A DNA stretch of 64,000 nt from Octopus sinensis (taxonomy: Eukaryota), in assembly GCF_006345805.1 (NCBI RefSeq), contig NC_042999.1, positions 52,390,001-52,454,000 on the forward strand, given 5' to 3'. The position numbers were made by a program, and so were the translations under genes. Below are positions 579 through 50,400 of the stretch, piece by piece; within the stretch, counting starts at the first letter, position 1, and every line of letters starts with the position of its first letter. The notes beneath the pieces were generated by a model that was not told the DNA's origin, ran no database searches, and saw nothing but the letters and a program-made list of their open reading frames with translations.

Positions 579-722
579 ATAAAAGGGTACACGACCTTTA
601 GCTCTGTCTTCTTCAATAGCTTTCTTCAAATTGTCTCCTCTCATGGAACGTTTATCATCCATCTTTATATTTCGACACTTTACTAGAACTATCTTGCAAG
701 CCTTAGCAAATGACGCGTGTGT
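579..722 (-). CDS. Gene A exon 5, 144 bp: THASFAKACKIVLVKCRNIKMDDKRSMRGDNLKKAIEEDRAKGRVPFY; the gene continues beyond the window start
   Basis: Acceptor gcag| and donor TAT|gtgagt. The His192-equivalent is retained, and the 144-bp length matches human DDC. Confidence 0.95.
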
Positions 723-4691: not shown

Positions 4692-4826
4692 CTCTTCTGA
4701 TTTATAAGCAATTAATTTTGTAACAGCTATCGCATCCTCCATTTCGTTATTTTCTGTTTTTATTTTCTTTATGGAAGCAGTTCTGGCAGCGAATAGACTC
4801 AGTAACATACACTCAGTAGACGAATT
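4692..4826 (-). CDS. Gene A exon 4, 135 bp: NSSTECMLLSLFAARTASIKKIKTENNEMEDAIAVTKLIAYKSEE
   Basis: Acceptor ctag| and donor GAG|gtaagt. Homologous to GSASEATLVALLAAR...KLVAYSSDQ, and the 135-bp length matches human DDC. Confidence 0.94.
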
Positions 4827-6345: not shown

Positions 6346-6465
6346 CTGGATTACACCTCCTCCATCTCCTTCAGAAGTAGACAAGAAGAATTTCGGCAGT
6401 TTTAGAGCCTTTGCCAACCAGTCTAAAACGATGACTTCTAGTTCAGTGGCTACAGGAAAGGATTT
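6346..6465 (-). CDS. Gene A exon 3, 120 bp: [40 protein letters not shown]
   Basis: Acceptor ttcag| and donor CAG|gtacg. Contains the TELE...DWL...LP...GGGVIQ motif, and the 120-bp length matches human DDC. Confidence 0.95.
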
Positions 6466-10416: not shown

Positions 10417-10530
10417 CCAAGATATGACGTCAGTTGCGAGTGCGTTTGAGAACATTCCTCCCAGAATAGCTGCATAGGATGTTCGCGAGGGGAAGAAAGA
10501 AGCGAATCTTGGATGTTGCCAGTGACATAT
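10417..10530 (-). CDS. Gene A exon 2, 114 bp: ICHWQHPRFASFFPSRTSYAAILGGMFSNALATDVISW
   Basis: Acceptor cag| and donor TGG|gtaagt. Same length as human DDC exon 3 and homologous to VTHWHSPYFFAYFP...GCIGFSW. Confidence 0.95.
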
Positions 10531-14024: not shown

Positions 14025-14228
14025 TCCTGACATGATTACTCGTTCGATATCATCAAAAACGTCTTTCCAGGGATGTGCATATTCAGGAGCTTTATCTGTA
14101 ATCATAATTCTCAAGAAGCCGGGTGCACACACAGGTAAAACCTTTCTGCTTCGAATATTATGAAAATAATCAACTATATATTTAGCTAATTCTACAGCGG
14201 CAGCCTCGAAGTCTTCAGCATTTTCCAT
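14025..14228 (-). CDS. Gene A (aromatic amino-acid decarboxylase-like), first coding exon, 204 bp: MENAEDFEAAAVELAKYIVDYFHNIRSRKVLPVCAPGFLRIMITDKAPEYAHPWKDVFDDIERVIMSG
   Basis: Aligns by eye to the DDC N-terminus (MNASEFRRRGKEMVDY...VEPGYLR...IIMPG). The ATG is in a GGCATGG context, the donor is GGA|gtaagt, and the intron is phase 0 at the same position as in human DDC. A possible acceptor (tttaag) 20 nt upstream suggests a non-coding first exon. Confidence 0.93.
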
Positions 14229-21281: not shown

Positions 21282-21501
21282 TCAAAGAGATTTGGAGCGT
21301 TCTAGCTTGGGAATAAGTAACACTGAATTCGCCAGTTTGCAAATAACGTCATAGCAATTCTGTAAATCTTCAGGTTCCGAGTGATATGAGCTGACAACAA
21401 ATCGAAAGGAAGAGTTTATCATCAATTTTGAAAGACAGCATATGAAGTTCATTGTTCAAATGTATTAATTTGAGTAACCTTTTGTTGTATTCATTGCTTC
21501 C
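21282..21501 (-). CDS. Gene B last exon: GSNEYNKRLLKLIHLNNELHMLSFKIDDKLFL / +1 frameshift / RFVVSSYHSEPEDLQNCYDVICKLANSVLLIPKLERSKSL*
   Basis: Acceptor aacag|. Homologous to GSNKVNEALL...VLRFAIC. An extra T at 21405-21407 (CTT TCG instead of CTT CGA) gives an early TGA at 21372-21370. The homologous stop is at 21284-21282. Confidence 0.88.
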
Positions 21502-22185
21502 CTGTTAAATAATAAATACAGCAGTAATTAGTAGACGTCGATAAATAAATTGATACTAAGTGTTAATACAAAGAAATAGTAATCATTATTTGCAGTAGGA
21601 CTATGTCGTATATTTGAGTAAGCACCGACACGTAGGTAACAGGTTCAGTTACCTGTTTTCTATGGTACCATTATAAGTCACCATAATCACAACATTCTCA
21701 TAGAATAAAACTCCTGTTTGTTGTAGGGTTTCTCATTTACATTGAAAGAAATGAAGCAACGTAAAGTGAAGTGTTTTTTCTCAATAACACAATGCACCAT
21801 GTGGTCCGGGAATAGAAACCGTGCCCTTATGATTGTGAGTATATCATTCTATCTCTAGACATCGGGCCTACACCATCCATTTGAGAGGTTCGTAATTTCA
21901 TTAAATCTATGTCTTTATTAAATGTTGCCAATACATCGAAGCAAGAAACACGAATGGCAAAGATCTAACTTCCGAGTTCTGAAAAGAAATTTTTTGTCGG
22001 AGCTTGTACTCAACTAAAGAGAAGCAAATAAATGCGTTTAATTTTAGAAACTATATCAGAACCTAAAATTATATAAATCGTGGGGCTACTGACAAGGATC
22101 ACCAGCAGCAACTGTAGTGGAGGCGCAATGGCCCAGTGGTTAGGCCAGTGGTAGAGTGGTAGGCCAGTGGTAGAGTGGTAGGCCA

Positions 22186-23090
22186 GTGGTAGAGTGGCTG
22201 CAGCAGGAAGCAGCAAGACAATCTTGGGAGGAGGTATCCAGGTCCAGCCCTGAAACTAAGAGCTATGGGGGCCAGTGGGACTTTCTTCATCTGAATGATC
22301 GACTACCTGAGAGGCGCTGGGAGACACCCGACGGCCTTAATAAGTATTGGCAGTTGGTGATACCCAAGAAGATGAGACCTGACCTGCTGGAAGAAGCTCA
22401 CAACCAAATTACAAGTGGACATCTGGGATAAAGAAAACGTTGAATCGGCTGCGGCACAGATTCTATTGAAGGGGCATGCGTCAGGACGTCCAAGAATGGT
22501 GTCGATCTTGTGATGTATGCTGCGCCAAGAAGGGACCGAGGAAGTGTGGGTGTGCCTCTCTGCAGTTATAACAGGTGGGTGTGCCCATGGAAAGGGTAGC
22601 CGTGGATATTGCTGGACCGTTGCCACTCACGGAAAGAGGAAATAGGTACATATGTGTGACCATGGACTACTTCACAAAGTGGCCTATGCCATCCGTGAAC
22701 AGGAAGCCACATATGTTGCGCAAGTGTTAGTAAATCAGTTCTTCTGTCGGTTCGGGGTGCCCCAGAAGTTGCATTCCGATCAAGGTAGGAACTTTGTATC
22801 AGCTGTGTTCCAGGAGTGCTGTAAGCTGTTGGGATTAAGAAGACCAGAACAACCCCAATGAGACCACAGTCGGACGAGATGGTAGAAAGGTTTAACTGGA
22901 CACTAGAACAAGAACTAGCCAAATATTGTATAGAAGGACAGATGGAATGGGATTTGAAGTTACCTTCGTTATTGCTCGCTTATCGTTCGGCTGCAATGTT
23001 GGTCTCCCGGTTGATCTGTTGATGGGAAGACTACCAGGGGAGGAGAGAAACCGCCAGCTATGTGAAACAGCTGCAAGAGAGGCTTTCGGG
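22186..23090 (+). mobile_element. Gypsy/Ty3 integrase remnant (H2C2 zinc domain and rve core)
   Basis: Encodes LVIP...HNQITSGHLG, C..C, ERVAVDIAGPLP...GNRY...MDYFTK and FGVPQKLHSDQGRNF, with stops and frameshifts. Confidence 0.92.
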
Positions 23091-25035
23091 TGAAGTGATG
23101 AAGCGTCGACCTTTATTTTGCATCAACAATTTTTTGCCTAGAGATTTCATTGCCTATTTTTCCTATATTTTTAAAAACATTTTTGGCCTACATTGTTTTA
23201 TTACCTATTTTTGGCCTATATTTTGTATCAACTCATTTTCGCCTATATTTTCTCAACTATATTTTGCCTTACTTCTCAACTGCATTTTGCCTATAGTTTT
23301 GTTATTTTTTGCCATTTCATAAAACAATATAGGCAAAATAACCAAATAGCAAACATATTTGATAAAAAATATAGAGCTAAAAATATAAGGAAAGAAAATA
23401 TAAGTCTATAAAATATAGGCGAAAAATTCATGAAACAATATACACAAAAATAGTTGATAAAAATGTAGGCAAATATATATTATATTGGCAAAGTCCAGTT
23501 CCTATATAGGCTAAAACCATAAGCAAAAACTATATGCTAAAAGCTATTGGCAACACTATCGGCAAAAATCTATAAGTAAGAAAGTGTTCACACTTGAAAA
23601 AATATACAGGCAAAAATATAGGCTGAAAACTATAAGGAAGAAAAGTTCACTTTTAATAATATGAATAACTATAGATAAGTACAGGGGTAAGTGTTTTTCG
23701 TCCTTGTGCCTATAGTTGTGAGTAAAAATTATTTTCCAGTTCTTGTGCCTATGTTTATGAGGATAAGTGCTTGTTTTAGTCAATGAGGTTATAATTGTGA
23801 AGATAAGTGTTTTTTTATTTGTTTTTGAGGATAAGTGTATTTTAGTCCTTGTGCCTATACTTGTTAGATTACCTGTTTTTAGCCCTTGTGCCTATAGTTG
23901 TGAGCATAAGTGTTTTTCAGTTTTTCAGTTTTTCATGAACTATTTTATATATATATATATATATTGTTTTATGAAATGGCAGAAAATGTAGTTGAGAAGT
24001 AGGCAAACAATAGTTGAGAAAATATGTGGGCAAAATATAGTTGAAAAAAATACAGGCGAAAAAGAGTAGATAAATATATAGGCAAACAATAGTTGAGAAA
24101 AGATGTAGGCAAAATATAGGCGAAAATCAGTAAATAAAAAATATAGGCAAAAATAGTTGATAAAACAATGTAGGCCAGAAATGTTTTAAAAAATATAGGA
24201 AAAAATAGGCAATGAAAAATCTAGGTAAAAATTGTTGATACAAAATAAAGGTCGACGCTTCATCACTTCACGCGAAAACTTCAGAACCTCTTTAACTTGG
24301 TGTACTTTTCGGCACAACTATAGGAACAAGGAGTAAAAAACACTTATCCTCATAACTATAGGCACAAGGACAAGAAACACTTATCCTCACAGCTATAGCA
24401 ACAATGACGAAAAAACACTTATCCGCACAACCATAGGCACAAAGTCCTAAAAGCACTTATCCTCACAACCTTAGGCACAAGGTGTAAAAACACTTATCCG
24501 CGAAACTATAGGCTCAAAAACTGAGAATTCTTATCGTCACAACTATAGGGACAAGCACTAAAAACACTTATCCTCACAACTATAGGCACAAGGACTGCAA
24601 ATCACTTATCCTCATAACTATAGGTAGAAAGACTAAAAACACTTAATTTAACAAGTATAGGCACAGCGACAACAAAACGTCTTATCCTCACAACTATTGG
24701 CAGAAGGACTAAAAAAACACTTATCCTCACGACTTTAGGCACAAGGCACAAGGACCAAAACACTTAACCTAAGAAGTATAGGCAAAAGAACTGAAAAGTA
24801 CTTATCCTCACAACTATAGGCACAAGGACTAAAATCACCTTAGCTAACTAGTATAGGTACAAGGACTAAAATACACTTATCCTAACAAGTAAAGGCACAA
24901 GGACTAAAAACACGTTAACTAACAAGTATAGGCACAAAGACTAAAATACACTTATCCTCACAATTATAGGCAAAATGACTGAATACAAACTTATCCTCCC
25001 AACTATAGACACAAAGACTAAAAAATACACTTATC
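23090..25035. repeat. Fold-back element with ctataggc sub-repeats and a tandem array of about 38 bp; related copies at about 25630-25780 and 31300-32455
   Basis: Inverted ends tgaagtgatgaagcgtcgacctttattttg (about 23090) and caaaataaaggtcgacgcttcatcacttca (about 24241). About 18 degenerate units of ctataggcacaaggactaaaaacacttatcctcacaa lie at 24310-25035. Confidence 0.85.
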
Positions 25036-25819
25036 CACTGCTGACCTAAAGGATGCGAGGAGTCCTTTGTCTCTATGACTGACCTCCCCACCATCTACCG
25101 AATCTATTTATAGACCTGTAGAATATGATCTAATCACCAAACTGCTACCATCTTCTCTCTAAAACAATGGTGGTGGTGGTGATGGTAATAATGATAAAAA
25201 TAAAAATAATAATACTATGCTGCAGCTGCTAATGCTAAATACTACTAACACTACATTAACACTACAACTACTACTATTATGATAGCACAGAAATCTGAGG
25301 CACTCTACCACTCTTACCATAACCACCACCCACACCACTGCTGCTGTTGCTACAACTACTGCTGTTACTACAAATAAAAACAATAATACCAGTGATATCA
25401 GTGATGATGATAATAATAATAATACTGAAAGGAAACTGGTGGAATCTCCTTATGGGCTAATAATGATTCATCTAGTGATGGTGTCACAATAAAAACGCTG
25501 GTAATTACGCAACCGGATAATCGCTACTTCATATGAGTGACAATGAAAAAACAAAATATTGTGAATAACGGTAGAAATGAAAATGAAGCCAATGGTGGCA
25601 GTTTTACACCCGGTAGGCTTCAATCTCTATAGCCAAGCTATAGGCAAAATTATAGGCTAAAACTATCGGCAGAACTATAGGCTAAAAGCTATACGCAAAC
25701 TATAGCTTAAACTATAGGCTGCATTTACTATACGCAAGCTATAGGCTAAAACTATAGACAGAACAATAGGCTATTTTTTAGCCTACTTTTTATCAGCTAT
25801 ATTGTTTTATGATATAATA

Positions 25820-27815
25820 TCAAATAAATGCCGACCAAGGAACAGCAAAGTAGTTGACATTGGGTAGGACAGTGCTTTGCCTGAAAAACATCGAAACAGG
25901 CAATACGGTAGACAATTGGAGGCCGATATCCTGTTTGCCACTTATGTGGAAATTATCGACTGAAATACTCACAGAGTCAATGTATGAACAGGAAAAAATG
26001 GAGTCCTGCCACATGAGCAGGAGGGTTGCACGCGTAAGTGCATAGGTACTAAGGATCAACTCATGATAGGCTGAAGTTATACTTAGAGATAACAAGAGAA
26101 TGAAAAAGTAACTTAGCCATGTCATGGATCGACTATCGTAAGGCGTGCGATGTGATCCCACATTCTTGGATTATGGAGTGTATGAAACTGTTTGGGACTG
26201 CACCGAATGTTGAGCGATTGCTTGGAAAAAGTATGGCGAATTGGAGGACGGAGATGACAGCATACGGAAGACCATTTGTACTGTGCTTGATTCCACTAAC
26301 ACTGATTCTGAGGAAAGCAAAAGTTGGTCATGTATTCAAAAACCACCAGCACAAGGTCAACCATTTGTTATTCGTGGATGACCTGAAACTTTATGGTAGT
26401 GATGATGCCCAAGTCAGTTCCCTCGTTGATATGGTGTATACTTTCAGTGCTGATATCAGAATGGAATTCGGACTGAGCAAGTGTGGTGTGTTAGTACTGA
26501 AGAGAGGCAATATCAAAAGTATGGATGGGCTAACGATACTGTCGGGGGAGGTTATGAAGTAGATAGAAGAAACGGGCTATCATTACTTGGGGATTTTGGA
26601 ACTGGATAAATTGATGGAGAAAGAAATGGCAGAAAAATTTAAGGTGGAGTACTTGCGTAGACTGAGACTGATCCTTAAGTCGAAATTAAATGGACGGAAT
26701 AAGATCGAAGCTATCAACACCTGGGTGTTTTCACTCCTTAGATATAGAGGAGGGTAATCGCATGAACAGTAGACGAACTAAATAGCTTAGACAGAAAGAC
26801 AAGGAAGTTACTAACTAGATATGGGTCACTCCACCCAAACATTGACACAGACAGACTGTATTATGTACTAAGAAAAAGAGGAGCAAGAAGACTAATTAGA
26901 TGCGAATACAGCATTAGAGCAGGAGAAAACCACATATCATGGTATGTAGAAAATGCCACAGAAACGCTGTTATTAGAAGTAAGAAGGTCAGGCTTGTATA
27001 GGTTGAAATATTGTAAAGATAAATCACTATACAAGGAATTGAAAACGAATGAAACGGAAAATAAGTGGGTAAAGAAAATAATGCATGGTCAATTTCATAG
27101 GGATGTTGAAGATAAGATAGACAGAGAAAAAATATGGCTGAGGAGGACTAAAAGTGATTTAAAACCGGATTTAAAACAGAGGCTCTGAGTTGTGCTGCCC
27201 AAGAGCAAACACTAAGAACAAACTATATAAAATACAGAATCGACAACACAGCAGAAAGTGATAAGTGCAGAATCTGTGGACAAAACGGTGAAAGTGTATG
27301 GCATATTACTAGCCAATGTACATCACTAGCCCAGAAGGAATATAAGAGACGCCACGACAATATAGCCAGGTTTGTCCACTGGACACTTTGCAACAAGTAT
27401 GGACTTGACAGGGCAAAAGTTTGGTACGACCACAAATCTGAAGGCATCGTCGAAAATAGAAATACAAAGATCCTATGGGATTTTTTGATTCTGTGTGACC
27501 ATGAAATAGAGAATAGGAAGCCGGACATAGTATTAATTGAGAAAGAAAACAAACTATGCTGGATCATAGATATAGCATGCCCATCTGACAACAAGGTATG
27601 CGATAAGGAAGAAAGAAAAGGTGAGAGATATGACAGGTTAGCTTGGGAAGTTAAGCAATTACCAACATGGTGGAAAAAGATCAGTGCAAGTGTGAAGGTA
27701 GAATACTTCAAGAATTCTTCGACTGTTCTTGAAGCATGACCAGTAAACAAGTGTCATCTGCGGACAGCTGACACTTTCCATCATACCCAGCAAAAGAAGC
27801 TGTGAGTTTTTGACA
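25820..27815 (+). mobile_element. Degraded R4/Dong-type non-LTR retrotransposon (RT, CCHC and REL) followed by a (TAA)n tract
   Basis: Encodes [43 protein letters not shown]...H, RHDN and RKPDIVL...IIDIACP. Confidence 0.88.
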
Positions 27816-27874
27816 AATAATAATAATAATAATAATAATAGTAATAATAATGATGATGGTGATGATGGTGATAG

Positions 27875-27924
<50 letters not shown>

Positions 27925-28004
27925 CCGTGAAGCACTGAAGTATGTAATTTCGAGTACCAGAATTAATGATAAAAAACGAGACTGTAAACGCATGAATGAT
28001 TTAC

Positions 28005-28106
28005 CTTTAGGCGAAAACATATGACTGTCATTAGATTGTCACCAATGAGTTCAAATTTGTCGTCTTTTTTTATCAAATGCTTAAACTTGTGGGCCAGTTT
28101 TATATC
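28005..28106 (-). CDS. Gene B exon 11, 102 bp: DIKLAHKFKHLIKKDDKFELIGDNLMTVICFRLK
   Basis: Acceptor tctcag| and donor AAG|gtaaat. Ends in the CFRLK motif, and the 102-bp length matches human DDC. Confidence 0.95.
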
Positions 28107-28965
28107 CTGAGAAGAACAAATATGAAAGGAAATGATTTAATGAGAGAAAACAATAATATTCAGAAACAAGTCCTTCATGATAGCGTCGCAGGTGTCTTTA
28201 ATTGTGAATGGATTGTATGTTTCTATATGAGTGTGAAGACATTATTGGAATAACAGTTAAATAACCAGGGGAAGCATATAAACTTTTAAATAACCTCAGT
28301 GTTATATGGTAAATAAATGTTGACAATATCTATTTACATATCTGTGCATCTCTTCACTTGATTAATGCTAAGCACTTTTCTTTTAACCGACATGTTCCCT
28401 TAAACTAGCGTTTTAGTTTAGGGCAATTTTTTAAGTATGGATTAGTCGGTTCCATTGATGGCAAGCACGCAAGCATATCATGCACAAGTTTCCATTAATT
28501 TTATTCTTAGATTTTAATAATTTTACATTATTTATCCTTATTTTCCGCACTCTGAGGTCATTCAATTTTTACTGTAATTATCTGTCTGTTATGAAAATAT
28601 GACCATCATTTCAGACTTTTTCTTCCCGAACTTTACTTGATTTTCTATTTCCCAACTTTGCTGTTGCTTATCAAATCCGAGTTCATACAGAGAAGCTTAT
28701 AAATACAGTTCCGAGATGTTGAGATAAATTTAACTCTAGACTAGAAATTTGGAAGAGAAATGAATTTTGGCGATCAACAGCTGTCCTATTTCAGCGTATT
28801 TCATCAATTTGTCACATGAATTGTTAGTTAATATAGGATGTCATAGCAATAACAGACTTTATAAACATAGACCAGATGACTGATGTCATAATGGAGTCAG
28901 TAAAGATTTTCCCTAGAATAAGAAGCTATTAACAGAATGATTCTAGTATACAAAACAAAGCTCAC

Positions 28966-29064
28966 GTTTCTGATGAGTTCCTGAAGTCTGTATATCCCAA
29001 AGAGTCGTAAAACAAACCAGAGTTTCAGAGATCGAAACGAACGTCCACAAGGAATTTGCCAGGA
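28966..29064 (-). CDS. Gene B exon 10, 99 bp: [33 protein letters not shown]
   Basis: Acceptor tgtag| and donor AAC|gtgagc. Contains the [14 protein letters not shown] signature, and the 99-bp length matches human DDC. Confidence 0.96.
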
Positions 29065-29339
29065 CTACAATGTACAACATTTAACAAATCAATAATAAGA
29101 GATACTTTTTTTAGTATTTGGTTTCAACAAAATTACAAGAACATGCAAGCCACACGCGCGCACTCTCGTATGAACATATTATTACATGTACATAATGGAC
29201 TCTCGTTGTATTCGACGCACAAAAGTCAAAGAATTGGACTTTCATTTTTACTCCAGATTTTGGCTTTTGTGCCTTCTGTGAGACGCTAAACCTGCTTGTT
29301 CTTTGCAAACCAGACGGCATCCTTTGCACACAGAACTGC

Positions 29340-29930
29340 ATTCTTTTGAGGTATGCGCTCAACCCTTCTATCGAAATGGCTCATGATGCCACTTTGAGAG
29401 ATTTTCCTCCATCTGTTACGGCCAACAGCACATTTCTCAAATTCTCGTGCTTCAATTCCAATATGCTTCGTATATTCCTCTTCAGCTTATTCTTGTATCT
29501 AAGAAGGGGTCTTCCTTATATTTCGTACTCCCATTTGAAGATGGCCATAAGTGAGAATTTTCGGTAGCCTTCCATCATTCATCCAAGCAACATGGCCAGC
29601 CCATCTTAACTGAGACAGCATCAAGAAAGCCGTTTTGCTTTGTATGTCACGTTTATGAAACAGCTGTTCATCAGACATTTTGTCTTTCCATGTGAAACCA
29701 CAAATATTTCTAAGACATCATTTTGGGAAATTATTTAACTGTTTGATAGGTCTTCTATTTGGTCTCCACGATTCAGACCCATTCAGCAGTGTTGAGATTA
29801 CAACTGTACAGTAAACTAAGATTATGCTTTCTAAACTCAATTCTCTCACATTGTAGACTTTTACTCGCTGCTTTCCAAAGACATCACAAGCCTTGGCGAT
29901 CCTATTTACAATTTCATCATCTAAAGAAGC
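29340..29930 (-). mobile_element. RTE-clade LINE RT fragment
   Basis: Encodes SLDDEIVNRIAKA...FGK and TLLNGSESW. Confidence 0.7.
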
Positions 29931-30796
29931 GCTACAATAGATATACAAATCTCCTATACATAGGTGTTACCCAGATATACGCTCATTTGTGTAACAGTAC
30001 GTGTATATGCATAAATATGTGTGTACATATTCGGGTATATTTGTGTGACCATGTGTTGCAGCTGTATTCCATGATTAAATACATTATAAATAACAGTGAC
30101 GCGAGTGTGTTTTAGGTAAATATTATGCCACATAACTTACAATAACAAACTGCTTCACGCATTTATATGCATATACATACAATGCACTCACAAATACACA
30201 CACTTGTGTGTGTGTGTGTGTGTGTGTGTGTAGTGTTTGAAGTGGTGTACAGGTGGTGTTTGAATGTGCGTATCTACAAAAATGTGCGTATCTACAAACA
30301 TATATAACAGGAGAGACAGAGAGAGAAAGAGAGAGATAGTTAGAGATAGAGAGAGGCTTTCAAAAACAATAACTGAACCAAGAATGACATCTTGAATTGT
30401 AATTAAATTTCAACAAGTCCACAACATCGATACAATATAATTGAAAAGAAACCTCTTTCTCTCTGCCCTTCCCTTTCATTTTCTTCTTCTTCCTCTTTTT
30501 CTTGTCTTTCTCATCGTTCTTCCTAAAATTGACATCTTGAAGGATCATTTAGCGCCAGCCACCTGTTAGTCAACACAGACGCTTTCCTTCACTTTCTACT
30601 CACTCCTCCACTCCTCCCTCCCTTCCTCTTTCTTCTTTCTCCTCTTCTAAACACTCAAAACAACATACGCACACACATACACACATACACGTACACATAC
30701 ATATTTTTAAATCCTAATGTTTAACTTAACAAGCATGTTAATATGCATATAATGAGGGAAGAGGAGGGAGAAAGGAAGAGAGGTATTCGAAAAGAA

Positions 30797-31214
30797 GGAT
30801 CTTTTCGGTTTGAACGGCAGTTTTTTCTAGCGGTCCCATATGAAACTGTCACCCATAATTATGACCCCAGTATCGATCTATTGCATTTCAATCTGTTTTA
30901 GGGTTAGGGTTAGGGGTGGGGGAAGGGTATCTTTTGTTCTTCAGAAATGTAAATAAACCCAATCTGTCTCTTAAACGAGGGACATATTCATATGGCACAG
31001 AATGTTTTCACCTCAATAGACGTCATTGATTGGTAGAAATTGCAGAAATTGAAGAAAAAAAAACAGTAAATATCTTACAAACTATAGAACTTTCTCAATA
31101 AAGCCAAGAGAAAAACATGTTTAATAAACACATTCTACCAGTATACGAAGTTTAAAAGTGTTCAGTTACGTGGGAATTATTTAAAAAAAACTGCCGGTCA
31201 AACCGAAAAGATCC
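30797..31214. mobile_element. MITE (418 bp) with TIRs of about 30 bp and a near-perfect 8-bp TSD
   Basis: TIR ggatcttttcggtttgaacggcagtttttt has one mismatch between ends. The flanks are gaaaagaa and aaaaagaa. Confidence 0.85.
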
Positions 31215-33342
31215 AAAAAGAATGACTGACTCAACAACGGCATCTTGAATTGCTGTTAAATTGGTAAAGTGTGGAAGAATTGGTCAGGAAGAACGAAAAT
31301 ATAAGGCTATAAAATATAGGCGAAAAATTCATGAAACAATATACGCAAAAATAGTTGATAAAAATGTAGACAAATATATATTATATTGGCAAAGTCCAGT
31401 TCCTAAAACAATATAGGCTAAAACCATAAGTAAAAACTATATGCTAAAAGCTATTGGCAACACTATCGGCAAAAATCTATAAGTAAGAAAGTGTTCACAT
31501 TTGATAAAAAATACAGGCATAATTATAGGAAAAAAATATAGGCTAAAATCTGTAGGGAAGAAAAATTCACTTTTAATAATATGAATAACTATAGGCAAAA
31601 ACTATAGGCTAAAAAACTATGGCCGCAAAAACTATAGACAAAATATAGGCTGAAACTAGAGGCAAAAATTATATGCTAAAGCTATAGACAAATTATAAAC
31701 TGCCTATGGTTTCAGCCCATAGTTTTTAACTGGTATGTAATTTCAGCTTATAGTTTTAGCCTATATAATTTCAGCCTATAGTTTTTGTCGCCTGCAATTT
31801 TGCCTAAAGTTTTAGTCTATACATTTTGTCGCCTATAGTTTGCCTATAGTTTAGCATGGAGTTTTAGCGTATAGTTATCCTATAGTTATTTTAGCCTATA
31901 GTTATTTAGCCTACAGTTTTGTCTAAACTGCCAGCCTATATTTTGTCATTTTCAGCCTATAGTTCTTCCTATAGTTCGCCTATAGTTTTAGCCGGTAATG
32001 TTTGTGGCCTACATAGTTTGTCTAAAGATATGTCTATATTTTGCCTATAATAATTTCAGTCTGCCTATAGTTTTAGCCTATAGTTTTGCCTATAGATTGA
32101 TTATAGTATTTACTTTTAGCCTATGGTTTCTGTCGCCCATAGGTTTTGTCACCTATAGTTTTGCCTATAGTTTTAGCCAATAGTTTGCTTATAGTTTTAG
32201 CCATGCCAATAGTAAACTTATGCTCACAACTATAGGCACATGACTAAAAACACGTAATCTAACAAGTATAGGCACAAGGACTAAAATACACTTATCCTCA
32301 AAAATATAGGTACAAGAAATAAAAAAACACTTATCTTCACAACTATAGCCTCATGGAGTAAAACAAACACTTATCCTCATAAACATAGGCACAAGAACTG
32401 AAAAATCATTTATACCCACAACTATAGGCCCAAGGACGAAAAAACACTTACCTCTATACGTGCATGTGTGTATATGTGGCTGTAAGCGTGTGTGCGTATG
32501 TATGCACATATATTATGGGTTTGTGTGTTTGTATGTGCATCTGTACACGTGTGGGTGTAAGTGTGTATATATATATATATGTATGCGTATGTGTGTACGT
32601 ATGTGTGCGCACGCGTGTACCTGTGTGTGTATATGTGTGTGCATGTGTGGGGCGGTCGGTGTGCGTGTAAATACAGAGGGTTGCGTATATGTACATGAGC
32701 TATATGGGCGCGCGTATGTCCGTGTGCACCTGAACGAGTGAATGTGTGGGCCTGCTGACAGGAGGACCGATGTCTGTCGTTGTGTATGTGTGCGTGTGTG
32801 TCTGGGTGAACACATGTACGCACACGTATACATATGTATATGTGTGAGTGTCTGTCTGTGCATGTAGCTTAATTTAGCCAGCCATATAGACTAAAGAGCG
32901 GAATATGACCACAGTATTGTGTTTGTCTACTCCAGCCAGTCGCCAAATGCTTGCGCACGTCAAAGCCGTTCAATCTGATACCGTAAGCACCCCCTCCATT
33001 TACATTAAATTAAAAAAATTTCTTTGCAATCATTTCTTGACCACAACTATAAGCACTCCCATCCCTATTCATATTAAATGCTTTGTGTTTTCTTTTATTT
33101 CTTTCCTGACCAAATCTTTCTCACTTTACCAAATGGGTCTGAACTGTTAGTATCACACCATCAGCATATAACTTGAAGCGAAAATGTAGATCTGAGAAAT
33201 TGTGAAGCATCTTACGTCACCTGACGAAGCTCTCTTGCACTGTGCGTTGCATCTGGTGTTATTACATCGTTCTTCGTCCACTAGGGAGCAGTGCAGAATG
33301 AAGCCAAAACAATTGTTGTGCTAATAAATGCTTTCAGTTACA

Positions 33343-34264
33343 CTTCGTCTTCCGTATTAATCTTTTAAAATATACCCCACATACAGCTCGGAATTCCGGA
33401 CGTAGATCTAACGATAAATGCACGGTATCGCTTATGACACCTGATAGCCATTTATATATGAGGTGGGTGAGTTATAATTAAAAAGAAATTTTCTTGTCTA
33501 TATGCTGAGAAATAAACACTAAATAAACTTCGTCTTCCGTATTAATCTTTTAAAATATACCCCACATGCAGCTCGGAATCCCGGACGTAGATCTAACGAT
33601 AAATGCACAGTATCGCTTATGACACCTGATAGCCATTTATATATGAGGTGGGTGAGTTATAATTAGAAAGAAATGTTCTTGTCTATATGCTGAGAAATAA
33701 ACACTAAATAAACTTCGTCTTCCGTATTAATCTTTTAAAATATACCCCACATGCAGCTCGGAATCCCGGACGTAGATCTAACGATAAATGCACAGTATCG
33801 CTTATGACACCTGATAGCCATTTATATATGAGGTGGGTGAGTTATAATTAGAAAGAAATTTTCTTGTCTATATGCTGAGAAATAAACACTAAATAAACTT
33901 CGTCTTCCGTATTAATCTTTTAAAATATACCCCACATGCAGCTCGGAATCCCGGACGTAGATCTAACGATAAATGCACAGTATCGCTTATGACACCTGAT
34001 AGCCATTTATATATGAGGTGGGTGAGTTATAATTAGAAAGAAATGTTCTTGTCTATATGCTGAGAAATAAACACTAAATAAACTTCGTCTTCCGTATTAA
34101 TCTTTTAAAATATACCCCACATGCAGCTCGGAATCCCGGACGTAGATCTAACGATAAATGCACAGTATCGCTTATGACACCTGATAGCCATTTATATATG
34201 AGGTGGGTGAGTTATAATTAGAAAGAAATTTTCTTGTCTATATGCTGAGAAATAAACACTAAAT
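33343..34264. repeat. 185-bp tandem repeat, 5 near-identical copies
   Basis: cttcgtcttccgtattaa starts at 33343, 33528, 33713, 33898 and 34083. Confidence 0.96.
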
Positions 34265-34459
34265 CATCTCACCACGAAAAGAAGTCAAAAACACATGCAT
34301 TGAATTCGACGCAACAAGCCAGCGAAAATTATTAATAAAATAGATAGCTCTAGATCTATTTTATTAATAATTTCCGTTGGCTTCCTGCGTCGAATTTAAC
34401 AATGTGTTTGTGACTTCTTTCAGGGGTGAGACGATTTAGCGTCTATTTCTCAGCATATA
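34240..34459. repeat. Imperfect palindrome whose left arm includes the end of the last 185-bp unit
   Basis: tatatgctgagaaata...aattattaataaaatagat pairs with atctattttattaataattt...tatttctcagcatata. Confidence 0.85.
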
Positions 34460-36585
34460 AAAAAAACCTGTACCACGGGAGCGAAAGATCCTGATGCGCA
34501 AAAGGTCAAGACTAAGAAACAAAAAATCTAAGCTGACATCAAAACATGAATTACAGAAAGTCCTTGACCAAATATACGGATTAGAAGACAATCTAAAACA
34601 ACACTATGATGAAGAACGTAACAATGCAGAAAAGAGAGCCATAGAAAACATCAAGAAAAATACAAAATGTTTCTAAAGTTTTGCAAAGAAATACTCGAAT
34701 ACCAAGTCAACAATAGGACCTCTCCAGAGACAAAATGGGGATGTAGTGAATAACCCTATTGAAATGGCAGAAATGTTGGGTCAACAGTATGAAAGTGTCT
34801 TCAGTGAGCCATCTAAAACCATGAAAATCCATAACCCAGGAAAATTCTTCAAGGATATCGACCATACTAAACCTACCCTATCCGACATTGATTTCAATCC
34901 AGAAGACATAGAAAGAGCCATAGACAAGCTCTCCATGCACTCGGCTGCGGGGCCTGACGGTTTCAATGCCATGATACTTAAAAACTGCAAGGTACAATTG
35001 TTGAAACCCCTTTATATGATATGGAGGGAAACTATGGAGAATGGCAAAATACCAAATACATATAAAGAAGCACACATAACTCCAATACATAAAGGGGAGA
35101 GCAAATCAAAACCAAAGAACTACCGACCAATCTCACTGACATCACACATTATCAAGGTCTTCGAAAGAATAGTTCGTGGAAAACTGGTTGAGTTCCTGGA
35201 ATCCAACAATCTGATGAATTGCAACCAGCATGGATTCAGGTTAGGTAGATCATGTCTTTCCCAACTACTGGCACACCATGACCAAATCCTAGAAAATCTA
35301 GAGAATGGATACAACACAGATGTTATTTACATCGATTTTGCCAAGGCATTTGACAAGGTAGATCATGGCATCCTGGGTCACAAACTTCGAAAGCTAGGAG
35401 TAGGAGGAAAAGTTGGTACATGGATACATGAGTTCCTTACAAATAGAACTCAAACAGTCACTGTGAATGGAACCCATTCAACACCATCACCTGTGACCAG
35501 CAGTGTTCCTCAGGGTACAGTACTCGGCCCAATCCTGTTTCTCATCCTCATCTCTGACATAAATGAAGATACAACCAGCAACGTCTCATCCTTTGCTGAT
35601 GACACCAGGGTCATGAGACAAATCAAAGACGAGGTGGATACAGAGGCCTTACAAAAGGACCTGACCACCATATATAAATGGCAGGAAACAAACAACATGT
35701 TGTTCAATGATAAGAAGTTCGAACTAATTCGCTACGGAACAGATCAAGATCTGAAAAATACAACAAACTACAGAAACCCATCAGGACAACAAATAATGGA
35801 AAAACAGTATGTGAAAGATTTAGGCATCCACATGGGAACCAACCTAAAATTCAGAGAACACCTTGACTCAGTCTGTCTTACTGCAAGAAAGTACAGCGGG
35901 TGGATCTTGCGCACCTTCAAATCAAGAGATACCTCAACAATGAAAACCCTCTGGAACAGTATGATACTTCCGAGGATTGACTACTGTTCTCAGTTGTGGT
36001 CACCAACAACAAAGGGCCAACTATCTAAGATGGAATCGCTCCAAAGAAATTTTACCTCATACTTCTCAGAAACGAGGGACCTGGACTATTGGCAAAGACT
36101 CAAAACCTTGAGGATGTACTCAATAGAAAGAAGATTTGAGCGATACCGAATTATATACATTTGGAAAATGATAGAGCAAAAGGTGCCTAACTTTGGTATC
36201 AAAACCTACCACTCACTGCGCCACGGAAGACGCTGCCAGCTACCACCAATCAACAAAAAGGCTGGCCAGGCAGCAAAAACCCTGCGAGAATCAAGTCTGT
36301 TGGTTCGAGGAGCACAACTATTCAACTCCATTCCGGTACATGTCAGAAATCTATCAGGATGCAGTGTGGATTCATTCAAATTGCAGTTGGATAGATACTT
36401 AAGCACCATTAGAGATGAACCCCATCTCCCAGGATATACACAACGTGCACAAACTGACTCAAACTCGCTCCTACACATGTCAAAATTAAACAGAGAATAC
36501 AACCTGGCAACCACACCAGACTCTGAGGGTGGAGTCTTCGACTTGGCCTGAGCATGGACTCAAACTCAAATGAAATGAAAATGAA
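34460..36585 (+). mobile_element. 5'-truncated CR1/L2-group LINE with an open 601-codon RT region (34746-36551) and an (AAATG)n tail
   Basis: Encodes YRPISLTS, QHGFR.GRSC, YIDFAKAFDKVDH, VPQGTVLGP and FADD. One in-frame stop lies at 34674-34676, and a 5-bp TSD atata lies at 34455-34459 and 36586-36590. Confidence 0.95.
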
Positions 36586-36709
36586 ATATAGACTAGAAAA
36601 TTTCTTTCTAAGCCCTTATTGTAATTATACATTTAATTTCACATTAATCGGTCTTCCTTTTGTATGCTGGCAACTGATAACATTGCTTTAAAAAAGTTTT
36701 ATATATATA

Positions 36710-37090
36710 TACGCCATGATAGATCGTTAGCCACTACACACATTTTTTCTCTCCTTGTTTTCTGTGTCCCTTTCTGTAGAAGAGCGTAGGCTCGAAACGT
36801 AAAATACTTTTTCAATTCCTGAGCGTTATACTAATACATCTGTTTGTTTTGTACACCGCCTGTCTTCGTCTTTTGCTTTTTTCGTCGTGGCATCGTCCGT
36901 TTTTCTGTCCCTGTTTCGTATACATTCGATCCTTCTTCCAAGAAATCTAATGCTCGTAGCTTAGTTTTTCCTTGGGGCTGGCCGGATCGGAGCGATCTCA
37001 AGACTAATCAGCCGAAATTGCTACGATGATCCGGTTCTTGACTGAAGATTGAAGGCTTCGAATGTCCCGTCCGTGTTTTTTGTATCGTCT
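36710..37090 (+). mobile_element. Penelope-like non-autonomous fragment, same family as 1880-2060
   Basis: cgccatgatagatcgttagccactacacac...gaagagcgtaggctcgaaacgt is shared with the copies near 1886 and 2872. Confidence 0.65.
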
Positions 37091-37126
37091 TAATGTTTTA
37101 CGTTCTTGTCCCAGTTTGTATTTTTC

Positions 37127-37205
<79 letters not shown>

Positions 37206-38462
37206 TTTATAATGAAGGAGAATACAGATTTATATCCGGTTTTATTCAGCAGTTAATTTCTTCTTTTCGTTTCTGCACCTACACAAGTTTCTGCAGTATG
37301 TAATTAATGCACACTTCAAAATTTGCAAATTTCTGTGCATTTATTGTTAGTTGCCATTTATGCAGGTTAGGATCAATCACATTGTTCAGATAGAATCTAA
37401 ATTAAATACAAATCCTGCCGAAATACACGTGGTGCTGTCATTATTTCAAAAATAGCTTAGACCGTCACCTTTTCAACTCTGCTGGTTAAAAACAAAATGA
37501 CTAGCTGTCCAAGAGATTTCAGTATTTTGCAGACATAGACCATCCGTAAGTGGTGAGTGGTAGTACTAATGCTTAGTATCAAGTTACCTTAAGAATGTTT
37601 TTTAATGTTAGGATCATTCCTCTCCGCAGTATTGCTACTTCTACTACTCTTATTATTATTGTTGATAATGTTAGTAATGAACTATAAGCCCATTATTTAA
37701 TTTGCTGATTTTATAATTAAATTAAATTTATTTGAATTTAAGGATATCGTTAATTTCGTTCCCAAATTGTTCTGTAATCCCTAGAATAAAGTCAATTTAT
37801 TTAGGAATCTATATTAATTACCCTCTCGACTTGCTATTGTTACTTGATTTCAGTTCTAATTTTAATATTATAGCTTATGCAATCATTCAAATTCATGAAA
37901 CGCATGTTTAGCTTGGGGAATACAACGTCATGCGCTCTTACATCTATGATTAATTAATTTGAACTTTTAAGTAAGAATTTGGTAAATTTCTCCTGCAAAC
38001 AATTCACACCATTTGCCTCCTCCGCTATATGGTTTGGCTCTACGAATTATTGTTATTTGTATTCTTTATTTATTATCTTTTCAGGATCAAATTAGTTTAT
38101 TTAAAATAGTGTATGTTTCTTAATTTTGCGGCCTCTAAATGCGTTATCGCCTTTGGCAATTCTTTTTATGTATGTTTCGCTAGCACCGATGAAATGAAAT
38201 ACTGATCTTCTGAGATATTCTAGCATCTGTACACTATTTCTTTATTTTTAAAGTTAGGCTCAGAGGGACATAGTCTATTTATTGCGCAATTACAATTTTT
38301 ATCTGTAGCTCTAGTTTTATATCTTGTTTTCTTTCATGATTATTACTTTTGCGCTTTCTGCCCTTTTTATCTTCTAATTTACATTCTGTTTCCGATTTTA
38401 GTTTCGCTTTCCAATATGTTATTATGTTATTATGTAATTTGGGTTATCATTCACAACGTCTC

Positions 38463-38512
<50 letters not shown>

Positions 38513-38686
38513 TTTGACTTCTACTCTGTATTTCTACAAGTTGACTCCATCAAGTCTCACCCAGAGACCTCAAAAGACAAGTTAGAAGTTCATGTTAGTG
38601 TTATGCCTAGGGTGTCATTTATTTGGTTTTACACATAGTATTGGTCTAGAGAATGTTTAAGAAAACATAAGAATATAATAAGTTTG

Positions 38687-38744
<58 letters not shown>

Positions 38745-41700
38745 TTATTGTCTTTGAACAGCTTTTAACGCTGGAGATTACTACGGTATCATCTGTTCAC
38801 TACCAGTGAACTAAGGTAACACCCCTTATTTTTCGAGCACCATCTGGAGTATTCGAACAGTTCCAAGCAGTGCAACTACTCCACACTTATGGCATCCCCT
38901 ATTTGTTCCATGTACGTCTCAAGATTTTTACTCACTGTTCCCAGGGCTCCGACAATTATTGGTACTACTACCACCTTTTTCAGCGACCACAACTGCTTAA
39001 CCTCCCAAGCTGACCTGTTATATCTATCAACTTTTCTTTATTCTTTATCGCATACCTTGTTGTCAGCTGGGCATGCTGTATCTATGATCCAGCATCGTTT
39101 GCTTTTTTTCTCAACTAATACTATGTCTAGTTTCCTATTCTCTATCTCATGGTCGCACTGAATCATAAAATCCAGTAGAATCTTTGCATTATCATTTTTG
39201 ATGATGCCTTCGGTTTATGTTCGTACAACTTTTTTGCTCTGTCAAATGCATACCTGTTGTAAAGTGTCCAATGGACAAGCCTAGCTATATTGTCATGACA
39301 TCACTCGTATTCTTTCTGGGCTAGTGGCGTACATTGACTGATAATATGCCATACGGCTTCACCATTTGGTCCACAAATTCTGCATTTATCACTTTCTGCT
39401 GCGTTGTCTACTCTGTATTTGATCTAATTGGTTCTTAATGCTTGTTGTTGCGAAGCATAGATTAGAGCCTCCGTTTCCGGTTTTAAATCACCTTGTCCAC
39501 AAATTCTGCACTTAGCACTTTATGGAGTTTTCTCTACTTTGTATTTGATGTAATTGGTTCTTAATGCTTGCTCTTGGACAACACCGATTAGAACCTCCGT
39601 TTCCAGTTTTAAATCCTTTTTAGTTATCCATAGCCACCTTTTCTCTCTGTCTGTCTCATCTTCAACATCTCTCTGAAATTGACCATGCATTCTTTTCTTT
39701 ACCCACCTATTTTCAGTTTCATTCATTCTCAAGTGCTTATACAGTGCTTTATCTTTGCAATCTTCCATCCTACGCAAGCCTGACCTTCTTCCAGTAATAG
39801 TGATTCTGTGAAATTTTTTACAGTTATATTATTTTTTCTAATGCTGTGTTCGCAACCAATTAGTCCTCTTCTCCCTCGTTTTCTTGGTGCATACAGTTTG
39901 CCTGTGTCACTAATTGGGTGGAGTATCCCATATCTTGTCAGCAACTTCCTTGTCTTTCTCTCAAAGCTATCTAGTACGTCTTCTGTCCATGCGATTACCC
40001 GTGCATGGAAAAATAACTCTCAAACACTGGGATGTCTACAATTTCCTGTGAGTATCTAAAATTTCCTTCAATATGACTGAAAGCTTGGGGAGGGGAGGTA
40101 GTGGATAATCTTCATGTAATACAGCACAGACATTTAAATGGACAGGGTTTTTCTAAGGATATAGGTAGCACTTGTCAGCACAATCTTTTGGATTTCTCTG
40201 AGACATGGTTCTCCTGGGATCTTATCTAGATGATTCTGACATCCCTTTTTTATCATACCTAGGGCATCAACAATAACAGGAACAGTTCTCACTTTAAGAT
40301 ACCACATCTTTTGTATTTCAATTTCCAGGTCCTTAAATTTACTTAGTTTTCCAAATTCCTTGACAGATATTTTTATCAGTGGGAATACTTACATCTACAA
40401 GTGTACAAGTCTTTCCTTCCTTGTCTTTAATAATTATATCTGGTCGATTAGCCTGGATCGTTCTGCCAGTGTTGACTTGAAAACCCCAGAGGATTGTGAA
40501 ATTTTTATCTTCAACGACTGGCTCAGGATGTTCATACCAGTAAATTATGTTCATACTAGTAAGCAGGAGTGCTGATTTTGTAGTGTTTACACATTTTCCA
40601 ATGTGAATACTCTTCTACCCTATAGTAAGGATTTTTATATTCGTTTGGTGCCAGCACAGAACATCCCCAAACGAGATAGTCTGTTGTTTCGTCAAATGTA
40701 TCGCAGAATCTGCATTTTGGGTCAGAACCGTTTTGAAGAACGTTAGCCTGGTAGATTTTTTTTGTGAGCAAGTTTTGGTCTTGTGCCACCAATATGAAAC
40801 CTTCAGTCTCTGATTTCAGTTCTGAACTTCTCAGCCACTGATAGGTTGTTGCTTGATCTACATCATCATTTTGAGTTCGAAGTATATACTATCCAAGCAG
40901 AAGCTTCTGGCTCCATCGCTCCTCAATTTGTTTCTGCTTGTTCTTTTTTGCAGTCTGCTTGATCCATTTTTGTGGCAGTGGTTTCAGGTTCTTAAAATAT
41001 TTCAGGATTAATGTCAAGTTCCCTTGCGAATTTTCAAGCTTCCTTGACAATAGAATGTGATTTTACGCTGCTTTCGTGTTTGCACACAAGTCGCAGCGTA
41101 CAGTGCTCTGTACTAGATAAATACCTGTTCAGTGATATTGTGAAGGTCTTATAGCACAGTTCTACCTACATCATTCCACTTCGTCCATTACTTCTAGCTA
41201 GGTACAGACGATCAACATCTGCTTTTGGGAGGTGCATGTTCTTAGAAGTTAGTAGTTTTCTTGTCTTCCTGTCTAGGTGTTGGGGCTCTGTAAGATTCCA
41301 GTTAATGATGTTAAAACTATATTGGACTATTTGAAGTGTCAGGGTGTTAATGGCTTCAATGCGATTTTTGGAGTTGAATTCAATTTTTAGTATGAGTCAT
41401 ACTCTCCTGTAATACTCCTTTCATATTATTTTATTTCATAGTAGCATGTTGTATACCTTCTCCTCCGTTTATCTCCAGGTATTTAAAAATTTTCTTGGGG
41501 GTCAAGTTCCTTGGTGGTAATGCTGGTATCTAATTTAATGGAAGCTGTTTGCCTGAACTTGCCTCTTACCAAAGTTGCTTCAGTACACTTATCAAGGCCA
41601 AAGTTCATTCCAATGTCATTGTTGAATTCTTTAACAGTTCTAAACTTAGATTTGTGTCCCTTAATATTAATTCTAGGCATTCTCAGTTTATAAGGTTCTG

Positions 41701-41780
41701 GTTTGTCTGCTATCTCATATTTTCCATTATGCCTGTGGCTATTAAGTTTATTCTCCTTAGGTTGTTGCTGTTTGTTACTT
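38745..41780 (-). mobile_element. Degraded R4/Dong-type elements (at least two pieces) ending at a (TTA)n tract
   Basis: Encodes ANRPDIIIKDKEGKTCTLVDVSIP, CRFCDTFDET and IGMNFGLDKC. The 39520-39777 ORF is paralogous to 26994-27188. Confidence 0.85.
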
Positions 41781-42181
41781 TATAGTTCTTAGTTATTTCA
41801 TTCTTAAGAAGGGAAGTGCATGAAGTAAGAAATGCTTAAATTATATAGGTTATCCGTTTTATCTGCATGCACCAGTCCTCCATTTTTATACCTTAGTTCT
41901 TTGGTAATTACATGTAATTTCCTTAAATGTTCATTCCCACATACTGGGAATTTCTTAAATTTAATATTCTTGACTATACACCACAGTCCATCCCCAGATG
42001 CCATCAATTACTGGCTTGGTGGTGGGTATTTCCTCATTTTATAAATCCTCTGTATCTGTGGAGTTTCTTCACTGATGCGATGATTGGAGTTTCATTCTTC
42101 TTATCAAAGAAGTAAGCTCTCCACCTCCATATATACATACATACATACATACACACATACATACATACATACATACATACA

Positions 42182-42241
<60 letters not shown>

Positions 42242-42390
42242 TAAGGGCTCCTAAAGGGCTCTTAATTTAGGAGCCCTTAATTGTATAACTACATGAATAA
42301 TATTTTTCTATATGAATAATATTTTTGTCTTATGACTAATTCGTCTTTTGTGCTGGGCACCTGGTAGTAAATAATATTACTACCCTTCTT

Positions 42391-42450
<60 letters not shown>

Positions 42451-42511
42451 AATTAAATCAAAAACAGAACACAAAGGATGTCGCGGTACACGTGTTTCAA
42501 GCTTTATAAAC

Positions 42512-42549
<38 letters not shown>

Positions 42550-42804
42550 CATACATATACATGTGTGTGAATATTGGTTGGCAGTTTATCGCTTTCTGCT
42601 GCCACTCATCAAATTTTGACGCAGTGGTATGTGAGATCTATGGAGTGTAATTTCAAATTGTAGTAACTGGATTTCAACGGGTAGTTACTGGATTTCTGGT
42701 ATTGATATCCATTAATATTAACCTCATTCAGCTGTTATTCAAAATATCCACTTCAGACAAAGACAAATATAGAATTATGGAATGAAAATGTGAAATTATC
42801 TTAC

Positions 42805-42895
42805 CGTATAGTTCGGCATATCTATGTTCTCTGTACATTGCAAATACAAAGGTGACATATCAAAAGCTCTTACAAGTGTAGTACTACGTTTAAAC
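42805..42895 (-). CDS. Gene B exon 9, 91 bp (equivalent to human exons 10+11 fused): (W)FKRSTTLVRAFDMSPLYLQCTENIDMPNYT
   Basis: Acceptor ttttgttttag| and donor ACG|gtaaga. Contains the AF...P.YL flexible-loop motif with the Tyr332-equivalent. Confidence 0.9.
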
Positions 42896-43099
42896 CTAAA
42901 ACAAAAATCAGTAAATTATATTCTACTCAACGCATGAAATATTCTAAATCTCATCTATTTAATACTTCCGAATATAGTTGTTATTCATACACTTTTTCAT
43001 ATTTTACACTTTTTCTATATCTTACACTTTTTGGATGTAATGAGGTAAATAGCGCAGCAATGATGTCTAGAAACTGGAAGACTATCGAACTGGAATTGT

Positions 43100-47290: not shown

Positions 47291-47334
47291 AGTTTTATCT
47301 GAGGAGATAGAGAGAAGAGACTTGTTATTATATC

Positions 47335-47570: not shown

Positions 47571-47599
47571 CAGATTGTTATTAATTAATCATTATTGTT

Positions 47600-50050: not shown

Positions 50051-50070
50051 AGTGAAACATCTTATCGCCT

Positions 50071-50315: not shown

Positions 50316-50400
50316 ATCTTATCGCCTGTTTTCGCTAAAATAATGTTTCACACAAACAGATAAATTGATTGAAATTTAGTAATGCTTGCTTCTAACTTAC

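Follow-up and report, generated by a model that had tools for sequence, protein, structure and literature searches.

The stretch of the Octopus sinensis genome analysed here (the window: 64,000 nucleotides of contig NC_042999.1, forward-strand positions 52,390,001 to 52,454,000, numbered below from its first letter) carries on its minus strand the first five exons of gene A, which encodes a member of the group II pyridoxal 5'-phosphate (PLP)-dependent decarboxylase family, fold type I. Gene A is an old tandem duplicate of DDC, the gene for AADC (aromatic L-amino acid decarboxylase), and on a modest balance of probability we regard its product as a working-type group II PLP enzyme with a rebuilt substrate cavity, most likely a decarboxylase that no longer prefers L-3,4-dihydroxyphenylalanine (L-DOPA). 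The catalytic core is kept and the residues that hold the substrate are replaced, so that the product is probably a different one; judged from its sequence, gene A is probably a maintained PLP enzyme of changed specificity.

Gene A corresponds to XP_036356876.1, annotated in O. sinensis as 'aromatic-L-amino-acid decarboxylase-like isoform X1' (495 aa), and the 239 aa translated from the window are identical throughout to the first 239 aa of that protein. Its locus (GCA_006345805.1, CM016861.1) matches the window with 100% identity across 24,228 overlapping nt. The gene comprises 12 coding exons spanning 42.4 kb; the five inside the window, all in phase 0, were defined by tblastn and splice-site inspection, and spliced mapping was exact on the genomic locus. 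The numbering of the human AADC sequence used as the tblastn query was verified at 28 landmark residues and by PDB alignment. Residue numbers given here are those of human AADC (the numbering of gene A itself is one higher, Asp101 being its own residue 102), and a prime marks a residue from the neighbouring subunit.

Exon 2 (10417..10530, minus strand; 114 nt, phase 0) encodes the equivalents of human residues 68-105, which form active-site loops 1 and 2. Lying between a CAG acceptor and a GTAAGT donor, it reads ICHWQHPRFASFFPSRTSYAAILGGMFSNALATDVISW in minus-strand translation. This peptide aligns without gaps to residues 68-105 of the human, pig and fly AADC/DDC structures, and the alignment bears out the five substitutions relative to human AADC listed in the initial annotation, Y79F, T82S, I101D, G102V and F103I, with Trp71 and Phe80 retained. 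The codon for Asp101 is GAC (10431-10429, minus strand). Exon 1 (14025..14228, minus strand; ATG at 14228-14226) supplies the first 68 residues of the protein (MENAEDF...VIMSG). The further changes that had been reported downstream, A106K, S108F and G146N together with a retained His192 (THAS), were also found where expected. Exon 3 (6346..6465, minus strand), which begins KSFP and ends GGGVIQ, carries A106K, A107S and S108F; exon 4 (4692..4826, minus strand; NSSTECML...KSEE) carries G146N, A148S and S149T in the PLP-phosphate loop; and exon 5 (579..722, minus strand; THASFAKAC...VPFY) keeps His192. Exons 6-12, encoding Thr246, Asp271, Lys303, Tyr332 and loop 3, lie past the low end of the window at locus positions 27923-52410.

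In published AADC structures the ring of the ligand is surrounded by Ile101', Phe103' and Leu353' and by Tyr79, Phe80, Thr82 and Thr246, in agreement with the earlier statement that residues 79, 80, 82, 101 and 103 line the substrate site, and the side chain of Ile101' is reported to be in contact with the ring. Gene A has in place of the canonical substrate-site set Phe79, Phe80, Ser82, Asp101, Val102, Ile103, Thr309 and Cys353. The 308-310 segment is altered by N308P, F309T and D310G. Loop 3 contains D345N, R347T, H348K, L353C, R356P and R358I, and Tyr346 is also changed (PNFTKWQ). In human AADC Arg347 stabilises loop 3 through Asp345 and His348, and residue 347 adjoins the backbone of Phe103' in loop 2; human AADC needs this Asp345-Arg347-His348 network for catalysis, and its three positions are Asn345, Thr347 and Lys348 in gene A.

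The scarcity of these changes was gauged against 103 other full-length metazoan AADCs and a further set of 215 diverse family members. Gly102, Phe103, Ala148, Asp310, Asp345, Arg347, His348 and Arg358 are each present in 103/103 of the other metazoan AADCs, Phe309, Ser149 and Asn300 each in 102/103, and Leu353 in 97/103. Position 101 is Ile in 94 of them, Val in 4, Leu in 3, Met in 1 and Thr in 1, and Asp occurs there in none of the 103 and in none of the 215 diverse homologs. Of 130 positions with conservation of 97% or more, 102 are unchanged in gene A and 28 are altered. A 'tyrosine decarboxylase-like' AADC-family paralog of the spider Uloborus diversus shows an independent loss of the canonical loop 2 (GGSVSSW for GCIGFSW) and of Arg347 (DYCHW); loop-2 divergence is thus not unique to octopus, while Asp101 still is.

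The remodelled pocket described for gene A is therefore real and larger than was claimed, but only part of it is specific to this gene, the rest being common to two octopus paralogs, B and C. All three genes have G102V, F103I, A106K, A148S/T, S149T, N308P, F309T/I, D310G/S, D345N, R347T/M, H348K/S/T, L353C and R356P/S, and none keeps Gly146, which is replaced by Asn in A and C and by Ser in B. The changes confined to gene A are I101D, Y79F, S108F, H348K and R358I/T. Paralogs B and C carry Val101, Tyr79, Ala82, Ser/Ala108 and Arg358 against Asp101, Phe79, Ser82, Phe108 and Ile/Thr358 in A, position 82 thus being Ser in A and Ala in both B and C.

Against this background of replacement, gene A keeps the Schiff-base Lys303 (SPHKW), Asp271 (HIDAAY), the partner of the pyridine nitrogen, Thr246, His302, Tyr332, Gly354 and Arg355 in addition to Trp71, Phe80 and His192, the residue that stacks on PLP, and the catalytic-loop Tyr332 (PGEYLQC) and His192 are kept in gene A of both O. 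sinensis and Octopus bimaculoides. A candidate Tyr332-to-Phe switch, an aldehyde-synthase reading of PNFTKWQ, was dropped: the numbering puts Tyr332 in the equivalent of DPTYLKH, where it is kept, and the changed residues are 346-348. The full protein matches Pfam PF00282 with E = 3e-128 over profile positions 1-375 of 375, and the window-encoded 239 aa do so by themselves with E = 1.3e-54. Against human AADC the full protein gives E = 6.6e-136 with ~42% identity, and its protein identity to octopus DDC is 53%. An AlphaFold2 (AF2) monomer predicted from a 59-sequence alignment has a pLDDT (predicted local distance difference test score) of 85 and a pTM (predicted template modelling score) of 0.87; its best Foldseek matches are human AADC 8ORA, histidine decarboxylase (HDC) 4E1O and pig DDC 1JS3, with probability 1.00 and template modelling scores of ~0.75-0.78.

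The changes fall in the elements with which the partner subunit reaches into the active site and which close it. Bulky side chains give way to smaller ones (Phe103 to Ile, Phe309 to Thr and Leu353 to Cys), and, in the mechanism we propose, the carboxylate of Asp101' would come to lie at the point of contact between Ile101' and the catechol ring in DDC. With smaller side chains and a carboxylate at 101', we infer that the preference for L-DOPA has been lost, and a substrate with a cationic or hydrogen bond-donating distal end would probably be accepted. The candidates, which we do not rank, are histidine-like amino acids, those with an indole or amino-aryl group (5-hydroxytryptophan (5-HTP), tryptophan, kynurenines) and basic amino acids. 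The proposal of the initial annotation that Asp101 points to a basic or polar, non-catechol substrate or to a new reaction is, at this stage, purely inferred. More specifically, Asp101 might recognise a cationic or amino-substituted side chain, so that the octopus would make an amine, or an aldehyde by way of the loop-3 change, that is made by no characterised animal group II decarboxylase; we hold this to be unlikely, with some real chance. An amine-rich tissue such as the posterior salivary gland can be suggested, speculatively, as the setting for a new amine.

The same residues allow a different account, also unlikely in our estimation, in which Asp101' is structural. It would form a salt bridge with the A-specific Lys348 or with the nearby Lys106 and so rebuild the contact between loops 2 and 3 across the dimer, and the substrate could be an ordinary aromatic one (tyrosine, DOPA or 5-HTP). 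Such rebuilding, to which we give the same limited credence, would follow loss of the ancestral latch formed by Phe103' and Asp345-Arg347-His348. Asp101 and Lys348 occur together only in A, B having Val101/Ser348 and C Val101/Thr348, and since human residue 347 adjoins the backbone of Phe103', residues 101-103' and 347-348 are neighbours. Their co-occurrence is nevertheless that of a single lineage and not a statistical covariation. An ordinary substrate would suit the retained Trp71, Phe80, Ser82 (with its hydroxyl kept), His192 and Gly354, the last of which has been linked to DOPA specificity; however, Ile101' reportedly contacts the ligand ring, and a carboxylate in its place would be expected to alter binding even if paired.

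Comparison with characterised enzymes places gene A on the AADC scaffold and apart from each known specificity. With canonical AADC (human and pig structures 8OR9, 8ORA and 1JS3, and octopus XP_029633174.1) it shares the fold, PF00282 and the core residues, and with octopus DDC also the 12-exon plan, whereas positions 101-103, 309, 310, 345, 347, 348, 353, 356 and 358 are replaced, the phosphate site differs at Ala148, Ser149 and Asn300, and the C-terminus is extended. Human HDC (PDB 4E1O) has the common fold, is the second-best structural match and shows that the scaffold can accommodate an aromatic side chain that is polar and cationic. Its specificity is tied to a Ser at the equivalent of Gly354, whereas gene A has Gly354 and so lacks the HDC signature. 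HDC also keeps the Leu-Gly-Phe loop 2.

The insect 3,4-dihydroxyphenylacetaldehyde (DHPAA) synthase (amd/DHPAAS, PDB 6JRL) is, like gene A, a DDC duplicate with Phe79, which acquired its new function through a few active-site changes and in which the loops bearing Phe103 and Leu353 are repositioned. In the fly the DHPAA synthase gene, amd, is likewise a tandem duplicate of Ddc. This precedent raises the possibility, to our minds a highly unlikely one, that the reaction itself has changed: a loosened loop 3 would misposition Tyr332, and the quinonoid intermediate would be oxidised instead of protonated, making gene A an aldehyde synthase (a decarboxylation-dependent oxidative deaminase). The human substitutions R347Q and L353P displace Tyr332 from PLP, and gene A has Thr347 and Cys353; Phe79 is among three residues characteristic of DHPAA synthase; and the position of Phe103, a residue that gene A has lost, controls the oxygen tunnel in that enzyme. 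The validated switches are, however, absent. DHPAAS has Asn192 and Tyr80 and keeps Gly102-Phe103 and Arg347, whereas in gene A residues 192 and 80 are His and Phe and both Phe103 and Arg347 are gone. Phe79-Phe80 of gene A makes up half of the Phe79-Tyr80 motif. Moreover, Arg347 and Phe103 are invariant in the 103-sequence survey, which includes two sequences with Asn192, and the octopus changes thus lie off the known route to aldehyde synthases. In plant aromatic aldehyde synthases it is the catalytic-loop Tyr332 that is replaced, by Phe; gene A has Tyr332.

Gene A belongs to a cluster in which paralog B, gene A and the canonical DDC gene follow one another on the same strand, DDC (XP_029633174.1) lying 44.7 kb downstream of A. 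A, B and DDC have one 12-exon plan, with exons 2-8, 10 and 11 of equal length. Octopus proteins were recovered with a 485-aa chimeric full-length query, trees were built by neighbour joining (NJ), and rates of nonsynonymous (dN) and synonymous (dS) substitution were calculated by the Nei-Gojobori method (NG86), both in simple implementations of our own and not with likelihood models. The NJ tree unites A, B and C with 100% bootstrap support in a clade on a long stem, which joins the cephalopod DDCs at 99.5%. A, B and C are tandem duplicates of DDC within the cephalopod lineage, not orthologs of tyrosine decarboxylase (TDC) or HDC. Nor is gene A orthologous to DDC itself, given the separate canonical gene nearby and the distinct A/B/C clade. 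Their proteins are annotated only generically, and no description of the octopus paralogs, their pocket or their expression was found in the literature, the coverage of which was incomplete, so that this is absence of evidence only.

In O. bimaculoides B and A (XP_014775473.1) occur in the same order, with a third paralog, C (XP_014775469.1), that converges on A; paralog B is represented by XP_014775474.1 there and by CAI9719284.1 in Octopus vulgaris. In O. sinensis the 10 kb downstream of A and the 10 kb upstream of DDC, two stretches ~24.7 kb apart, yielded no paralog C. With the O. bimaculoides loci set against that of O. sinensis, A and C are nearly identical at synonymous sites across exons 6-9, where dS is 0-0.07. 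Exons 2-3 of B are close to those of C, with a dS of 0.17 in exon 2, and exon 2 of A differs from those of B and C at a dS of 1.3-2.0. This exon-by-exon pattern shows mosaic gene conversion among the paralogs, a homogenisation that exon 2 of A has escaped. Positive selection on exon 2, where 12 of the 38 residues differ from B/C, was considered and rejected, dS of 1.3-2.0 giving a dN/dS of ~0.12-0.16. These same values indicate that Asp101 is old and has been maintained under constraint, and is not the outcome of a recent adaptive burst.

The two sister paralogs look degenerate and A does not. In the O. sinensis assembly the 3' part of gene B occupies 21282..56244 on the minus strand, upstream of A, and its recognisable exons, all on that strand, are exon 5 (56244-56101), exon 6 (52320-52254, with T246V), exon 7 (50495-50401, with D271E in HVEASYAG), exon 9 (42895-42805), exon 10 (29064-28966), exon 11 (28106-28005) and exon 12 (21501-21282). 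Neither tblastn nor blastn detected exon 8, the Lys303 exon (YADSFSMNPHKW...), in the interval from exon 7 to exon 9, and in the last exon an extra T near 21405 shifts the frame (+1) relative to O. vulgaris CAI9719284.1. These lesions could be real decay or assembly error. In O. bimaculoides the acceptor before exon 10 of paralog C is AA where AG would be canonical (positions 31069-31070 of the C locus sequence). An older UniProt model, A0A0L8H5W6, leaves out precisely this exon.

Gene A itself is intact. All 12 exons are open, with canonical AG/GT splice sites, in both O. sinensis and O. bimaculoides, and the possibility of disabling lesions in the seven exons outside the window, raised in the initial annotation, was not borne out, none being found. 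Conservation of Asp101, likewise raised there, was upheld: the O. bimaculoides ortholog has Asp101 too and matches the exon-2 peptide with 100% identity. Between the two species the whole gene gives dS = 0.113 and dN = 0.070 (omega = 0.62, below 1 with P = 0.02). Exon 2 differs by 4 synonymous changes and no nonsynonymous one, where 5.8 nonsynonymous changes were expected (P = 0.003); exons 7-8, which encode Asp271 and Lys303, have 3 synonymous changes and 1 nonsynonymous; and exons 2, 7 and 8 together have 1 nonsynonymous change against 14.6 expected (P = 7e-6). The expectation of constraint, as measured by dN/dS, thus held in exon 2, where dN = 0, and did not hold to the same degree over the whole gene, for which omega is high. 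Gene A is fast-evolving overall, but the exons that encode its pocket and PLP site are under strong purifying selection.

Several observations weigh against a maintained enzyme of new specificity. A whole-gene dN/dS of 0.62 is high, and gene A has 87% protein identity between O. sinensis and O. bimaculoides compared with ~95% for canonical DDC, protein identity being the measure by which DDC served as the rate control. The PLP-phosphate ligands are changed too (A148S, S149T and N300S). G102S, R347Q and L353P are disease-causing, loss-of-function variants of human AADC in which Km is raised or activity nearly abolished; unless its changes compensate for one another, the octopus protein could for this reason catalyse poorly. 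The AF2 monomer has a pLDDT below 50 in loop 2, beside Asp101, and is unreliable there, as would be expected for a loop that packs on the partner chain. Annotated isoforms of A, B and C often are without exon 2, 3 or 4, and protein searches found no transcript-derived (Logan) proteins near gene A. Finally, although the dS of exon 2 implies an old split, the protein search with the chimeric query turned up no ortholog, nor any other A/B/C-clade protein, beyond the genus Octopus.

Some of these points would be accommodated if gene A were a relaxed, decaying duplicate or a catalytically feeble pseudoenzyme, its odd pocket representing accumulated damage and not adaptation. The elevated whole-gene dN/dS, the 28 altered positions among the 130 near-invariant ones, the pathogenicity of the three human variants, the lesions in both sister paralogs, the exon-skipping and read-through gene models and the failure to find transcript-derived proteins in the protein searches all fit such an account. 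We nonetheless judge it decidedly unlikely. Twelve open exons with AG/GT boundaries have persisted in two species at dS = 0.11, the near-absence of nonsynonymous change in exons 2, 7 and 8 makes the rate heterogeneity along the gene significant, and all core PLP and catalytic residues are kept. Exon 2 has in addition stayed distinct amid active gene conversion in the cluster.

There is, lastly, a very remote chance that gene A acts mainly as a partner subunit, forming a heterodimer with DDC or a paralog and inserting Asp101', Ile103' and Cys353' so as to retune or inhibit the DDC site. The active site is shared across the dimer interface, loops 2 and 3 of the partner chain completing it; the changes in gene A are concentrated in these trans-acting elements; the genes lie next to each other, and there are transcript models with A-DDC and B-A read-through. 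Gene A, however, keeps the full catalytic set in cis, which a pure regulator would not need. A working enzyme with a rebuilt cavity remains the explanation that we favour.

Some database gene models are fusions of neighbouring paralogs. The O. sinensis 'isoform X2' joins exons 1-6 of gene B to exons 7-12 of gene A, and O. vulgaris CAI9719283.1 (900 aa) joins gene A without exons 2-3 to canonical DDC; several other isoforms lack exon 2, exon 4 or both. Such chimeric and exon-skipping models may reflect either read-through or sloppy splicing, or annotation artefacts. At its C-terminus gene A has a Cys-containing extension of 15-20 aa past the canonical end of DDC, encoded in the last exon (locus 52165-52410). 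In O. sinensis this extension ends ...KCFKCIII, resembling a CaaX box; in O. bimaculoides it reads ...KCMIS followed by IFH, and a terminal CaaX is thus not conserved.

Elsewhere in the window, reverse-transcriptase open reading frames (ORFs) are found on the plus strand at 34746-36551 and 60194-61990, each of ~600 aa and matching Pfam RVT_1 with E ~4e-30, with a fragment at 26119-26562. These look like retroelements of the long interspersed nuclear element (LINE) type, located in gene B introns and upstream of gene B exon 5. Simple-sequence tracts occur at ~54600-55400 and 56000-58400, one CA/TG-rich with a GC skew of +0.38 and the other (TA)n-like with a GC content of 0.22, and both yield spurious long ORFs.

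AADC-family enzymes determine which biogenic amines an animal can make, and cephalopods represent a major independent experiment in complex nervous systems and amine-rich secretions. In gene A every catalytic residue is kept and about twelve positions with little or no variation among 103 other metazoan AADCs are replaced, three of them (Gly102, Arg347 and Leu353) being sites at which single substitutions cause human AADC deficiency. If the enzyme is active, it would represent a second viable architecture for closing the AADC active site, with a bearing on how pathogenic variants are read and on enzyme engineering, and it would indicate an unrecognised octopus metabolite. The cluster as a whole is a small-scale natural case in which duplication, mosaic gene conversion and differential decay proceed together, and in which the specificity-determining exon is the one to escape homogenisation.

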